This document shows, piece by piece, positions 17,433 to 44,090 of a stretch of DNA of 64,000 nucleotides. The position numbers and the translations under genes are program-made. This DNA is from Calcarisporiella thermophila CBS 279.70. Lineage: Eukaryota > Fungi > Calcarisporiellomycota. The notes below the pieces were generated by a model. It was not told the origin of the DNA. It saw only the letters and a program-made list of their open reading frames with translations, and did no database searches. The stretch spans positions 380,021 to 444,020 of the forward strand of contig NW_027192210.1 in the NCBI RefSeq assembly GCF_041956535.1, given 5' to 3'. Position 1 is the stretch's first letter. Each line of letters opens with the position of its first letter.

Positions 17433-19283
17433 TCACTTTTCGGTATTGTGTTTTTTCTGCTGCTCCTTCTTTTTATTTCTCTTCCTTGCCACCTCTTCTA
17501 CTTCCTCCCATGCTGCGTCCTTCATTTTCTCCCACATATCGCTAGCAATTTTTCCGCGCTTCACTAATCTATTGCCGCCACTTGCTACTTTACGCTTCTT
17601 GTGATCACTGTGGTGTAGTGTCTCGCCCCTCTGTTCTCCCATATCACGTCGGAAATAAATGTTCTCTTCAACGTGCTTGTTATGATTATGCGTTACCGAG
17701 TCGGAGATGGCCACAGGACGGATATGAACAACCGATTGACAGCTGCGCTTGAAATAAATATTGTTTTGATAGTTCTCATTCTCCTGCTCTACCCGCGAGT
17801 GAGACTCAGAAATGGGAGTAATGCTAACGTAACATGCCCCGTCATCATCGATCCAATAATCCTTTCGTTCAACTGCACTTGGTTTCTCCTGTCCCTTCTC
17901 ATTCTCCTTCTCATGCTTGACTCGTCGTCCATATTTCCTTGCCCCTTTTTGCTCCTCTTCATCCCCGAAATCATCATCCTCCTCCTCTTCGTCCTCATTA
18001 TCGTCTTCCGCAATGTCTTCCTCGTTATCAACTCTCTTCTTCTCAGACATATAGATATCAGCGAAATTTGCACTCTCCGCTAAATCATCCCGGTGCTTAC
18101 CCCGCTTCCAAAACTTGTCATTTTCACCATTATTGCAGTTGGCATTGACAGCCTCGGTATTGGATATTGCCACGGGCTGATTTTCAACCTTGGTGTGATC
18201 ACTTTCGTGGGAGGTATGGTGATAATCCTCATCTCCTCGCTTCCAAAATTCCTCGTTCTCAGCGTCGTTATGATTCACATTTTGAGCTTTCGCGTTTGAG
18301 ATGGCTTTGGGCTGATTCTTGATTTGCGCGCGGTGACGGTCATAGTAGCTCTGGTGCCAATCATTGTCATACCAACGCTTCCAGAATTCACTGTTTTCCG
18401 CGTCACTGTGGTTGTCATTGATCGCTTTCCCGTTAGACACCGCGACAGGCCTATTTTCAGCAAGGGTATGGTGGTTGTGCGAGCTATAATGGTCATGGTG
18501 ATACCAGTCATCATCGAATCCACGCTTCCAGAACCCATCGTTGTCGATGTGATTTCCATTAACATTTACCGCCTGCGAATTCGACACAGCCGTGGGGTTA
18601 TTTTTTATTATCGTGTCATCCAAATGATGGTAATCGTGGTAGTGGTGGTGGTGGGGATGGTGGTGGTGCCTGTGTTTGTTTCCCCAACGCTTCCACAAGT
18701 TTCCATTTTCTCCATGATTCGAGTTGATATTCTTTGCCTGGGAATTCGACACTGCTACCGGATTATTTTCGATCTTATGATGATGGTCATGCCAGTGTTC
18801 GTGATGGTGGTTCCAGCGCTTCCACAAATCACCATTATCTCCATGATTTGTGTTGATATTCTTTGCCTTAGAATTTGACACTGCTACCGGATTATTTTCG
18901 ATCTTCTGATGATGGTCATGCCAGTGTTCGTGATGGTGGTTCCAGCGCTTCCACAGGTTTCCGTTTTCGCCGTGATTACAATTGATATTCTCTGCCTGCG
19001 CATTTGAGACAGACGTAGGCTCATTCTCTACATGTAGATGATGATCCGAATAATGGTTATCCCAATCTTCATCATCTCGGCGCTTCCAAAACTCAGTATT
19101 CTCCTGGTGGTTGGCATTGAGATTTTTTGCACCAGCATTAGAGACTGCAACTGGTGATGCATCTATCACCATCGTATGGTGATGGTGGTGGTGATGGTCC
19201 CAATGGTCATGGCGCTTATCGACAGGAAGACCATTCACCAGGGTGCTGGCGGTAAGAGCGAGAGCAATAATAATGAATTTCAT
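17433..19283 (-). CDS. Secreted His/Asn-rich Kex2-processed repeat protein (KEP), 616 aa, intronless
   Basis: Signal peptide MKFIIIALALTASTLVNG, pro-peptide LPVDKR, then eight 43-55 aa repeats each ending in [FL]WKR and two degenerate repeats ending in NIYF[KR]R. Confidence 0.88.
   Translation of the reverse strand: MKFIIIALALTASTLVNGLPVDKRHDHWDHHHHHHHTMVIDASPVAVSNAGAKNLNANHQENTEFWKRRDDEDWDNHYSDHHLHVENEPTSVSNAQAENINCNHGENGNLWKRWNHHHEHWHDHHQKIENNPVAVSNSKAKNINTNHGDNGDLWKRWNHHHEHWHDHHHKIENNPVAVSNSQAKNINSNHGENGNLWKRWGNKHRHHHHPHHHHYHDYHHLDDTIIKNNPTAVSNSQAVNVNGNHIDNDGFWKRGFDDDWYHHDHYSSHNHHTLAENRPVAVSNGKAINDNHSDAENSEFWKRWYDNDWHQSYYDRHRAQIKNQPKAISNAKAQNVNHNDAENEEFWKRGDEDYHHTSHESDHTKVENQPVAISNTEAVNANCNNGENDKFWKRGKHRDDLAESANFADIYMSEKKRVDNEEDIAEDDNEDEEEEDDDFGDEEEQKGARKYGRRVKHEKENEKGQEKPSAVERKDYWIDDDGACYVSITPISESHSRVEQENENYQNNIYFKRSCQSVVHIRPVAISDSVTHNHNKHVEENIYFRRDMGEQRGETLHHSDHKKRKVASGGNRLVKRGKIASDMWEKMKDAAWEEVEEVARKRNKKKEQQKKHNTEK
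18687..18944 (-). repeat. Near-identical 2 x 129-bp tandem duplication inside the KEP gene (repeats 3 and 4)
   Basis: ttccagcgcttccaca recurs 129 bp apart; both units encode WNHHHEHWHDHH.KIENNPVAVSNS.AKNIN.NHG.NG.LWKR. Confidence 0.9.
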
Positions 19284-20259
19284 AATTAAATGAGAGTAAG
19301 GGGTAGAGGGATAAGTTATGATAAATAAAACTTTGGATATAGAGACGCCGCTGGGAAATTAGGGGTGAAAGGGGGGTACAAAGCAAAAGCAAAGGAGTGA
19401 TATATTTTATAAAGGCCCTTTTTTTTGGTTCCTGAGGAAAGGAGAGAGATTGACTCGAAAAATGATTCGAAAAGGCACAATAGGATGAATTGGAATGAAG
19501 CTGATCGAGCGCTAAGCTTTATATTCTCGCCCTCGGATAATTAATTCTTTTCATATTGATGCTATATTGAAAATTTGCCCATGCGACAATGGACAGACTA
19601 AGTTAATTCTTGTAAATGCGAGAAGGAATGTCAACGTACTAGTTCAAGTCACGGTAGGAAAAGCCTAACCAGAAAGGGAGGATCGCCGCGAAGAATGTGC
19701 TCGGCCTTGGCTTAGGACAATTTACCCCACGCAAATAATGCCGATCCCTGATCATAGGGAAGAAAACACTTTCCCATTTATGATTGACTCCTTGAATTAC
19801 ATCCGACGTGATGTTCAGTATTTAAAAACAATGCGAAAAACTTCGCGAGTAAAAAAAATTAGACTTAAGAATTTAATGTACACGCCTTTAAATCTGACCA
19901 AACGGTAATTAATTCGTTTAGATCTAGAATAATCTTTAAAATGGGATAATAGGAAGGAACTTCTTTATAATCTTGATTTTAACTAAACCCAAAGTTTCAT
20001 TCAGAATTTTTTAATATACCGTAGATATATGATTTTACATATAGGATATTATGTTTTATTAATTATATTATATGCCGGAAACTATTAGACTGGATAAAGA
20101 AAAGTGTGAATAGAAAAGAAAACAAATGTGAAACCATTTCGTTTAAAAAGACATTCGAACATAAAAGGAAAAAAAAAATAACTTGAATGCAAAAGTGTTA
20201 TACGAAAGACATTGAAGGAAATATAAAAAAGATATCATTTAAACCATAATTCAAAATAA

Positions 20260-21427
20260 TTATTTGTCTGCTAAGAGCGATACAAGTTTCTTAATCGGGC
20301 TCACTATTTTTGTTTCTGTCGGTTCTGTCGTATCAGCACCCTGATCTTCCTCCTCCTCGTCATTAGATGCCAGATCTGTGATGGGTTCCAGTTGGCGACG
20401 ATGGGCACTCTTCACCATCTTGCTTTTCTTGTTGGATTTAACCGACTTGCTGTGCTTATGCGCTTTGCTGTGATGCTTTTGACTCTTAGGCGCATCGAAC
20501 GACGGTTCCATACTCTGAGGTGCAGACTTTTCATCGACTATTGTCTTTTCCTGTTCTTGAGGTTGGGGTTGCGCTGGTTCAGGAGCCGCGGGGGCAGCTT
20601 CTGGACCACCCCCTCCTAATAATGGGAGAGAACCCACCAAGGGTAGTTGCCGACGTAGTAAACCCTGACCTGGGATGACTTCGAGTACACCTTGCAGCGG
20701 ACTTGGCTCCATTCCGACTGGGTTTGCTAGATCAGGAGTTTTAGCACGAGCAGCTTTCTTCGCGTGAATTGGAGAAGCTTTCTCTAAGTTAAAATCACGT
20801 CGATTAACCGCTTTTCCCTGGGCTTTAACCTTTTTGGTCTTTGTTTGCTCCTGAGGCACAGCCATTTGCGCCTGCTGTTGTACTGGCACTGCCACCGGAG
20901 CAGGAGCCTGCTGACTTTGCCCCAACTCTCCAAGCACATCTTGATCAATTAGAGGGGGGAGCAGACCCGTCTGCCGGCGCTGTGGATTCACTACCTTAGC
21001 TTTCGCCTCTGGCTTCACCGTCTTAATATTTTTCTTGGCCGAGCCCTTAGTAGCCGCATTTTTCAAGGTTTTCTGTTGCTGATTCTGTACCTGTTTTGAC
21101 TTTGTCTTTGCCTTCGCTTTTTGCTTTTTCTCATCCTGATTGACCTCTGGTTGGATTTGCTCCTGAGGCTGTTGCTCCACTTCTGGTGCCTCTCCTTGAT
21201 CCTGTTGCTCAGGAGTACTATAGATGAACAATCTCGTTAGTTTTCTCGACACCATTTTTAGGGGGAGTCTGGGCTTACATGTCAAGCAAGCTTGAAACAA
21301 CGGGAACTTGCTCCAGACCCAAGTCTCCGCGTTTAGCCAGGAGGTCTTGTGAGATAGTTGGTGCACTCTTGGATAGAGTTGCGAAATAGAGCATCGCCGA
21401 AATGGCGATGAATGTAGTTGATTTCAT
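20260..21427 (-). CDS. Secreted Gln/Lys/Pro-rich protein with multiple dibasic sites (second KEP-like precursor), 2 exons
   Basis: Exon 1 (21427-21279), not in the ORF track, reads MKSTTFIAISAMLYFATLSKSAPTISQDLLAKRGDLGLEQVPVVSSLLD; an intron gtaagc...ctaac...tatag joins it in frame to TPEQQDQ of ORF 20260-21366; internal QRR, NRR, LRR and HRR sites. Confidence 0.75.
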
Positions 21428-22157
21428 GATGATAAGTGAGTGGTGCTGTACAGGTATGCTCCTGAGAGAGGCAACTTGTGCTTTTTTGATACAGTAAAAA
21501 AACTTTTCAAAAATATATATAGAGAGGAGAAGGGATGAATTGAGGAAAAAGATGAAAAATTTGAAAGAGAAAAATGGAGAGAAAATATAAACTGATGCAA
21601 TATAAAAATGAATATCAGAAATTTACATACATAAATGAAAAATGAAACAATCGAAACGCTCCCACTTAAATTGCTTGCTAAAGCATGAGATTTTAAGAGG
21701 CAAAGTCGACCGATCCTATATAAAAACGTATAAAAAGAGAAATTAAGAAAATAATATTGGACAAAAGCACACACCATATCTGGTGCCTCAGTCCCTTAAT
21801 GGTGATATAATGCTTTGTGCGAATGCCTCTTCACCGGCTGACGAAAAGAGAGGTTGCAAAGGAGATATTTCATCGGTTGTGTGAAATTAACTGTCGATCG
21901 ATTTTCAACTTTAACCAATTTCCCCGCAATCATACCTTCTAAAAAGGGGTATATTAAGAGCGATCGTTTCAAAATAATTACTTTTCTCAGTTTTCAAGGG
22001 AAAAAAGGGGCGCAAGGTATGTCGTTATTTGACAAGCCCCTCCTTATCAAGGGAAGATGTTCGTGTTTATCAGTTTTATTTGGTACATACTAGAAAACAA
22101 TAATTACAATAATCGACAAAACAGACAAATCCCAATTCAGGCAAGCAACCGACATGT

Positions 22158-23343
22158 CTAGATATCCACTGGGGGTGGTCTCCAGGGCCCAGCGTCTGAG
22201 TGACGACATCCTCCTTCATTTTCACAACGACAGCTGCCACCGAACTATGACAAAAGAGGACTCGTAAAACGCAGCTTCCTTTTGAAATTTCTTAAGACTA
22301 TAATAAATTACCCACCTTTTCGGGTAGATTTTCTGGCGCTATATCTTTCAAAAGAGAACTTGTGTATTTGCTACCTAGAATCACAATTTTACTAGCCGTC
22401 ACCTCGTCCAAAAAATTCTAAATAGGATTAATGGCCAAGATCATAGGAGCATAACCCATTGTTCAGGAAGAGTCATCAACAGTTTTCCGTAAAATAATTT
22501 ACCTTTATGAGATTCCATATAGACGAAAACAATAGAGGCGCATTTATCACATACATCCGTCCGAGCTGCTCTGGATAGTAGTCTTGCGCTATTGCAGTAG
22601 TTCGACGAACAAAGCTCAAAGCTCGTGGTGCTTCCTTAAGACTTAGGCCCTTCAAATCCATGATTACCAAGCACTCCTCGATATTTCTCTCAGCATACGC
22701 GGAGCATGCGGGGAACTTTTCGCGGACAAGTTTTTCGTATCCTGAAATAAAATGCTTGATCATACGATCCTCTGTTGTCACCTTAAAGAGCTCCGTAATA
22801 TCTGCGCTTCCTGCCTCTTCGAAATAGACTGGTCTCCCAAAACGATCCGTCTTGTGATACTAATGCAATGATAGAGTGTTAAGAAGTAGAGCTACGCTCT
22901 CATGCAATCTCCCTACATACATAGCGAGGATATAAACTTTCCACCACTTTCTCCTCTGGAAATTCAAAATTTCGGTAGAGTTCATCCACCTTGAAATCTC
23001 TTCGCCATTGCTCACATGCTCGTATCATTTTCATAGTGGCTTCCAAGTCAAATTTCCTAGCTCGCAAAAATCTCAATATTAAATAATCCGTGTGTCGATC
23101 CGGATTAAAAAGTCCTTCGGACATCATTTCTGTGCGACAACGATCAAGAGTTGATTGTTGCTTGAGAGTTAGTGCTCCAACTCGACCAGTTCCTCCAAAC
23201 TTGGCTGGAAGTCTACTTGCTGAACCACGCACACTGTGCACTGAAAAAGTGGAAACTGAGCGTGGATCTGTTGTGAATGCGAGGGATTCATCAGAAGCTG
23301 AGTGTGATGGACGTAGTGGATATCCTAGAAAATTCTTCTTCAT
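22158..23343 (-). CDS. SEC14: Sec14-like CRAL-TRIO phosphatidylinositol transfer protein
   Basis: [52 protein letters not shown]-terminal GGSCRC...[10 protein letters not shown]; the start codon is uncertain. Confidence 0.9.
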
Positions 23344-24101
23344 TCCTCCTGCTAAACACAAAATGATAAGAGGATAGGTGGATGAGTGTTATACTGTGCA
23401 ATAGATTGGTAATATAGATACTTTCTAATTATGAAAAAGAATTTCAATGTTAAGCTATTAAAATTTTGATAATAGTATTATTACATCTATATATATAGTG
23501 TAAAATGACAAATGAAAGGTCACGCTTGACCCTGAAATCAAATGGAATTTTTCCTAGAATTCTATTTGCAATACAAATGAAATCAAATTCCCCATTTTGC
23601 CCTATATTCGCTATCTCTAGACTCTGAACTCGAGCTGTCATCAAAAATTCATCAAGAGGCGCTGTATTTTGTAATCTGCAACAAACATTATTTCGCTTCG
23701 TCTTGCCTTATTATGCCTTTAAGATTGCTCATTTTAAAGATAGGATAAGTTGCGATTTTATATTATATATTATACTATTTTGGATAAATTAATCCTGTAA
23801 AATAAATTTTTCGACAAAACCTATTTAACAAAATGTATGCGATTTTTTTGCTTTCATGGGTCACGCTCTGCGACCATTAGGAATAGCAGGCGAAAAGATA
23901 ATTCCAGTATCAAAAGCTGTAAAAATAAGAGATTACACCCTAGATAAACATGGTGAATTCTCCACTCTTCGGACGTGATATTTATGGTTTTCAAGTTGAA
24001 TGCGATTGTAAAACTGGCGCAGAGAAAATAAAATAAAGTGATATTTAATATTAAAATCAAAGTCGAGCGAGTATGAACACAAAGCGTATATATAAATCCA
24101 A

Positions 24102-43537: not shown

Positions 43538-43623
43538 TTAAATAAATATATACATATTTATATGCTCATTCCACAATGGTTGACAAGGTTATTAACAAGG
43601 AATATACTGTATATCTCCTTGAT

Positions 43624-43954
43624 NNNNNNNNNNNNNNNNNNNNNNNNNNNNNNNNNNNNNNNNNNNNNNNNNNNNNNNNNNNNNNNNNNNNNNNNNNNNN
43701 NNNNNNNNNNNNNNNNNNNNNNNNNNNNNNNNNNNNNNNNNNNNNNNNNNNNNNNNNNNNNNNNNNNNNNNNNNNNNNNNNNNNNNNNNNNNNNNNNNNN
43801 NNNNNNNNNNNNNNNNNNNNNNNNNNNNNNNNNNNNNNNNNNNNNNNNNNNNNNNNNNNNNNNNNNNNNNNNNNNNNNNNNNNNNNNNNNNNNNNNNNNN
43901 NNNNNNNNNNNNNNNNNNNNNNNNNNNNNNNNNNNNNNNNNNNNNNNNNNNNNN
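43624..43954. other. Assembly gap (331 N)
   Basis: Run of n characters. Confidence 1.
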
Positions 43955-44090
43955 CCAGACGATTGCTATCTATGAATTTCGAAATAATAAATGTGACTGC
44001 ATATTGCAGCGCCACATTTATGGTTCATATAAGACACAAAGCCTACAGTTCGTGTCGATCATTTGAATCGAGACGCGACAAATCTTGAAG

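Follow-up and report, generated by a model that had tools for sequence, protein, structure and literature searches.

A Kex2-type repeat precursor of Calcarisporiella thermophila predicted to release peptides with variable histidine-rich heads and a conserved asparagine core

Introduction

A precursor belongs to the KEP class if it has a signal peptide and three or more repeats, each of 8-100 aa, bounded by dibasic sites (Le Marquer 2019, PMC6339444; Umemura 2020, PMC7329392). KEPs are numerous in Mucoromycota (9 per strain), where the peptides are longer (PMC6339444, PMC7329392). Tryptophan and HH are frequent in KEP cores, and 2560 of 7878 KEPs stand alone (PMC7329392). Many KEPs yield pheromones or toxins, and knockouts of KEP genes often show no phenotype (PMC9769878). 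Most KEP peptides are without known function, and Rep1 of Ustilago maydis is the one amyloid-forming example that we found in the literature consulted. Rep1 is a Kex2 polyprotein that gives about ten peptides of 34-53 aa together with a longer non-repeat part, and its peptides form amyloid in the cell wall (PMC3133707). Among bacterial amyloids, curli CsgA and Pseudomonas FapC are built of strand-arc-strand rungs with inward columns of Asn, Ser and Ala that stack into a two-sheet beta-solenoid; the 23-aa curlin repeat carries the motif N-x-hydrophobic-x-hydrophobic-x-Q and a Gln column (PMC10192328). In designed peptides, HxH placed on amyloid strands coordinates Zn (PMC8431744).

C. thermophila is a thermophilic member of Mucoromycota (PMC11393059), its lineage is sister to Mucoromycotina (PMC6899921), and the habitats given in the description of the genus are coal spoil and warm soils (PMC7760618). 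Here we describe a C. thermophila gene that resembles Rep1 in its layout, the peptides of which would, by analogy, also end as wall amyloid. The two differ in that the repellents build amphipathic fibrils for aerial growth, whereas the C. thermophila peptides are strongly hydrophilic and His-rich. The precursor class is already known and the His-headed peptide family is new: compared with known KEPs, each module has two parts, a variable His head and a conserved Asn core.

Organization of the gene and its predicted products

In the 64,000-nt stretch of C. thermophila DNA analyzed here (the window), reading of the open frames located a 616-aa frame without internal stop on the minus strand, the plus strand over the same interval being closed. 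On this frame we confirmed the signal-like N-terminus, the LPVDKR piece and the eight modules of 43-55 aa ending in [FL]WKR that the initial annotation had reported. The gene and its surroundings were resolved into the following features:

17433..19283, minus strand: open frame of 616 aa for a secreted Kex2-type repeat precursor; no intron required; identical sequence present in the ESM Atlas
19230..19283, minus strand: signal-peptide-like segment (aa 1-18) by hydropathy, similar to the N-terminus of the contig-21 paralogue; cleavage point putative
19212..19229, minus strand: short pro-piece LPVDKR (aa 19-24) with the first dibasic site
19080..19211, minus strand: module 1, 44 aa, 10 His, ending FWKR; nearest to the single module of the contig-21 paralogue
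18945..19079, minus strand: module 2, 45 aa, acidic head, one Cys, ending LWKR
18816..18944, minus strand: module 3, 43 aa, 8 His; forms a recently duplicated pair with module 4 (pS 0.35)
18687..18815, minus strand: module 4, 43 aa, 9 His
18522..18686, minus strand: module 5, 55 aa, 13 His
18375..18521, minus strand: module 6, 49 aa, 7 His
18237..18374, minus strand: module 7, 46 aa, 3 His, Tyr/Trp/Asp head
18102..18236, minus strand: module 8, 45 aa, 4 His, one Cys at the core position equivalent to that of module 2
17862..18101, minus strand: spacer (aa 395-474), first an Asp/Glu run and then a Lys/Glu stretch
17694..17861, minus strand: two-Cys segment (aa 475-530) with Cys484 and Cys515, also present in both paralogues; its two Cys are separated by a KR site
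17646..17744, minus strand: degenerate module (aa 514-546) ending YFRR, overlapping the two-Cys segment over the latter's second half; outscores every one of 2000 shuffles
17436..17645, minus strand: charged C-terminal tail with three more KR sites and, by hydropathy, no hydrophobic anchor
20260..21427, minus strand: adjacent secreted precursor with [KR]R|Q sites, belonging to a triplicated block
22476..23361, minus strand: Sec14-like (CRAL/TRIO) gene with visible exons, part of the same block

The signal peptide was called from hydropathy and pattern, the 11-residue hydropathy reaching 2.5 at the N-terminus and nowhere exceeding 1.5 downstream. The tripeptide WKR occurs eight times, against a maximum of two in 20,000 shuffles, and a degenerate DNA pattern of the core matched the window eight times, at the eight modules, against no match in 100 shuffles. 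The stretch ahead of the degenerate module (aa 475-513, ending YFKR) was not significant as a module in the shuffle test. The two-Cys segment, conserved in three secreted paralogues, gave no match in Pfam, PDB or the ESM Atlas; since a KR lies between its two Cys in the window protein, the pieces might remain disulfide-linked after cutting. Single Cys residues stand at aa 102 (module 2) and aa 383 (module 8), and these could cross-link peptides through a disulfide. Elsewhere in the window, a run of N at about 43620-43960 falls within an ORF call.

Conservation of the module core

The heads and the core consensus quoted in the initial annotation match this frame, although His is less evenly spread among the heads than that description implied: peptides 1 to 8 carry 10, 5, 8, 9, 13, 7, 3 and 4 His, and His makes up 11-25% of six of the eight. 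The module array of 370 aa holds 58 His and 25 HxH pairs. Once released, the predicted peptides would measure 41-53 aa and 4.8-6.3 kDa, with pI 4.4-6.7 and GRAVY -1.1 to -1.8.

Core identity among modules is 48-85%. Over nine modules (the eight and the one of the contig-21 paralogue), P, S, N, A, N, N, N, W and R are invariant, and the codons of these residues mostly differ between modules. Comparison of the nine modules over their last 28 codons gave a mean pS of 0.83 (saturated) and a mean pN of 0.25. This combination of saturated synonymous change, low pN and invariant residues with varying codons indicates a genuine coding sequence, in which the module cores, cut site included, are old and under purifying selection. 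What is conserved is the core and the cut site, while the heads differ in length and His count. A recent expansion of the whole array was considered and rejected, modules 3 and 4 alone forming a recent pair.

Searches for homologues

The claim that the repeat family is unrecognised held: no homologue outside the C. thermophila genome was found in protein, domain or structure databases, and the proposed profile HMM check returned only the paralogue. In a set of 5.8 billion proteins, the repeat region retrieved no homologue, the module profile only the paralogue, and the contig-2 paralogue only itself. Pfam, NCBIfam and PDB sequences gave no match, the ESM Atlas, searched by features, no relative beyond the identical sequence, and scans of metagenomes and bacterial genomes no homologue. 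A set of 1.84 billion representatives returned the paralogue and three Bacteroidota repeat proteins. The latter, surface proteins of Flavivirga and Draconibacterium, carry a short NKPTTIS stretch in tandem repeats without ladder or KR and are probably chance matches. A shorter DNA pattern gave 22 bacterial matches, about 17 being expected by chance, mostly in short or closed frames. These searches were bound by length and word limits and concern a lineage with few genomes, so that the blanks are not proof of absence; and since orphan KEPs are common, a lack of homologues is by itself unsurprising. In the parts of the KEP catalogue supplements that were consulted, neither the organism nor the motifs appear, the genome postdating those surveys. 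No Ustilago protein was among the sequence-search matches, and it is on these matches, rather than on a direct Rep1 alignment, that the gene is set apart from Rep1.

Predicted Kex2 processing of the precursor

Classification as a Kex2-type polyprotein was upheld by the sequence features of the KEP class, by retention of the dibasic site despite saturated synonymous change, and by the presence of kexin-type loci. The precursor has a signal peptide, as judged from hydropathy and pattern, and eight tandem repeats of 43-55 aa, where the class definition asks for at least three of 8-100 aa between KR, RR, KK or RK. The genome contains six kexin-type P-domain loci; both of the two that were inspected combine a subtilase S8 sequence, the P-domain and a membrane anchor. 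Candidate Kex1-type enzymes are also present, S10 carboxypeptidases being numerous, with no single one distinguished as the Kex1 orthologue. Four of the six P-domain loci form two convergent tail-to-tail pairs (G000 C5:1110032-1112179 and C7:757755-759762).

Acidic residues follow soon after most KR sites, a partial fit to the reported preferences of Kex2; unlike the acidic or small residues preferred there, several P1' residues are Trp or His (PMC2515848). The conserved F/L-W may aid recognition by the protease besides belonging to the mature peptide, and folding of the precursor in the ER might resist cleavage, which in Kex2 substrates is limited by structure (PMC2515848).

Paralogues and a triplicated block

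The gene family has three members; the genome, searched with one profile for the module and another for the two-Cys segment, yielded no more. The contig-21 paralogue (VTP21DRAFT_5176, 307 aa) opens with a signal peptide and carries a single His-headed module, which ends in FWRR and retains the whole Asn ladder, as well as the two-Cys segment and an acidic tail. In the contig-2 paralogue (VTP21DRAFT_4398, 209 aa), a short His-containing piece ending WRR is joined to the two-Cys segment; it lacks the Asn core and so has no module. A C-terminal motif D-L-x-x-x-x-M-x-x-x-x-W is common to the two paralogues, its counterpart in the window protein being discernible by eye only and left uncounted. A secreted protein at L017 1426-2556, which combines a Pro/Ser/Thr stretch with Gly-rich repeats some 22 aa long, gave a weak match and is not a member by profile.

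The gene is flanked on one side by Nup98-96 and on the other by the second secreted precursor, followed by the Sec14-like gene; a Pex5-like gene lies nearby. The Sec14-like gene, the secreted gene of the [KR]R|Q type and the family gene make up a block that is present three times (window 17433-23361; L034 1-5320; L035 1-5284), the window copy being inverted relative to the other two. The secreted precursors of the three blocks have a common [KR]RQL motif and a similar first exon. On this unrooted comparison, the most probable origin of the array is that a single module was repeated internally within one of the three copies of this old block. Sec14 functions in Golgi secretion, so that its proximity to kexin substrates could be either coincidental or meaningful. 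The neighbouring secreted gene of the contig-21 block (L034 1935-3140) encodes a long region rich in His, Lys, Asp and Glu that includes six consecutive His, and its product is possibly a further metal-binding secreted protein.

Predicted fold of the modules

Structure prediction and the single-module paralogue both back the beta-arch core that had been proposed from the sequence. For modules 1-8 without an alignment, AlphaFold2 gave pTM 0.57 and an identical strand pattern in each module, two of five models being confident. With modules 5-8 supplied as a shallow alignment, modules 1-4 reached pTM 0.63 with core pLDDT 83-92, in a run where one of five models was confident (67 versus 25-30). 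Each module forms one strand-arc-strand rung in this four-module model, and the heads and [FL]WKR ends lie in low-confidence loops. The ESM Atlas model of the full sequence has pTM 0.54. Such values are to be read with the bias that repeats impose on structure predictors toward solenoids.

The eight-module model resembles the flat beta-helices of SufB/SufD (Z 12.3). Among 48,161 chains, the best match of the four-module model, itself confident in one of five runs, was the E. coli CsgA fibril (Z 8.8, rmsd 8.4, 90 residues, 11% identity), the sole chain with Z above 8. Foldseek returned nothing at E below 0.001, its top rows, FapC and CsgA, being weak and not significant. As modeled, the rung may share with curli and FapC the strand-arc-strand form, the inward Asn/Ser/Ala columns and the two-sheet solenoid. 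It differs in lacking the curlin motif of the 23-aa repeat, the Gln column and a Pfam match; the CsgA resemblance is therefore one of shape at most. Curli subunits are moreover bacterial and carry several rungs per chain, against one rung per released unit in a product of eukaryotic secretion. Retention of the Asn ladder in a paralogue with a single rung suggests stacking between separate molecules, and is the strongest independent argument for it.

Proposed function and alternative explanations

Our leading explanation, held tentatively and with a little less than even confidence, is a functional amyloid akin to that of Rep1 but hydrophilic, built from kexin-released single-rung peptides with His heads serving metal or pH. 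According to the known pathway, a Golgi kexin would cut the secreted precursor after each KR, and a Kex1-type carboxypeptidase would trim the ends, yielding eight peptides of 41-53 residues ending in F/L-W. The conserved core of each peptide is predicted to fold as a strand-arc-strand beta-arch with small and Asn side chains inward. Since a single arch would be unstable alone, the arches would stack in register, either within one precursor, as a solenoid with nicked loops, or between molecules, and the predicted product is a cross-beta fibre of hydrophilic character, situated within the wall of the cell or spore or on its surface. The His/Asp/Trp heads would protrude or extend the first strand and may bind Zn, Cu or Ni, thereby cross-linking fibres or retaining metal at the surface; alternatively, they may serve as a switch that responds to the change in pH from the acidic secretory lumen to the exterior. 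Metal binding is plausible from the His content; the heads of modules 7 and 8, with only 3-4 His, count against the leading explanation. The GRAVY values, used as a proxy, do not indicate amphipathic, surface-active peptides of the Rep1 kind, and a water-repellent coat is disfavoured for very hydrophilic, neutral to acidic products.

The same His content could instead serve soluble chelators that scavenge or detoxify Zn, Cu or Ni, the core being a folding or uptake tag. His-rich composition in six of eight peptides, acidic partners, strong hydrophilicity and the coal spoil and warm soil habitat of the genus, where metals may matter (PMC7760618), are in keeping with this idea. We nevertheless consider it unlikely, since selection acts on the core and not on heads of varying length and His count, the invariant Asn ladder is left unexplained, and no metal-transport gene was recognised among the scanned long ORFs of the window.

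Somewhat more doubtful is that the protein stays uncut or partly cut as an eight-rung beta-solenoid of the wall or for adhesion, with KR serving turnover or release. A continuous solenoid is predicted for the whole chain (pTM 0.57-0.63; Atlas 0.54), and folded substrates can evade Kex2 (PMC2515848); but KR is invariant in every module, where it lies in predicted loops, and the single-module paralogue cannot build a one-chain solenoid.

His-rich antimicrobial peptides exist, and the initial annotation had listed an antimicrobial role among its suggestions. Diffusible signals or antimicrobials, similar to pheromones, histatin or candidalysin, would also accord with the pheromones and toxins released from many KEPs (PMC9769878) and with the W and HH of KEP cores (PMC7329392). 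However, the peptides are 41-53 aa long, neutral to acidic and without hydrophobic or amphipathic helical stretches, and none of the XA/XP Ste13 dipeptides that, with short cores, mark alpha-pheromone precursors follows a KR site. We regard this explanation as improbable, and a membrane-active role in particular is disfavoured by GRAVY and pI. Of the original interpretation, upheld in part, the Kex2 polyprotein, the predicted beta-arch and the unrecognised family stood.

A dikaritin-type RiPP precursor with oxidatively cyclised cores is very improbable: the precursor layout is the same, and links to DUF3328 genes can occur for KEP types that contain HH or W (PMC7329392), but the modules are far longer than known cores, the neighbours are Nup98-96, Sec14 and a Pex5-like gene, no DUF3328/UstYa gene was recognised among the scanned long ORFs of the window, and the genome gave no PF11807 match, in a search where the control was likewise silent.

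If the amyloid explanation is true, the gene would be a second, unrelated and hydrophilic case, in Mucoromycota, and would show that amyloid rungs set free by proteases were invented more than once; with their His heads on a scaffold like that of curli, the peptides would be the equivalent in nature, from a thermophile, of designed Zn-binding amyloids. The most far-reaching form of it, which we think unlikely, is a natural metallo-amyloid of protease-released single-rung beta-arch peptides, with a constant stacking core and interchangeable His heads mixed along the fibre; an early-diverging fungus would thereby make an extracellular material that is cross-linked by metal or even catalytic. Peptides of this length can be synthesised, which makes assembly and metal binding directly testable. 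The importance of the gene is limited by the family having been seen in one genome, by the commonness of orphan KEPs and by a larger system of similar character in the same genome.

Asn-rich family B of the same genome

This larger system, family B, consists of Asn-rich KEP peptides with 93 profile matches in the C. thermophila genome. C. thermophila, which has several kexins, invests heavily in Kex2-released Asn-rich peptides. Family B resembles the gene described here in its secreted Kex2 precursors with Asn-rich modules of about 50 aa, and a gap-free register aligns Asn, Ala and Asn (three invariant positions) and an xxNP start. It differs by a conserved hydrophobic N-terminal half, at the place where the present module bears its variable His head. 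The family B profile did not match this gene (hhalign probability 0.4%). For a remote common origin of the C-terminal half, a post-hoc full-length register test gave weak values, p 0.003-0.13 depending on the alignment window, with unrelated Bacteroidota repeats scoring higher, and a local test gave p of about 0.2. Kinship of the module with family B is possible on these sequence comparisons. The pool of heads of a metallo-amyloid would comprise the polyprotein and the single-module paralogue, and perhaps also the roughly 90 family B peptides. Two family B precursors directly adjoin the single-module paralogue (L034 7132-7671 and 8428-9363). The first of these genes encodes a module ending AWKR and a VYVSN stretch that resembles VAVSN of the window gene.
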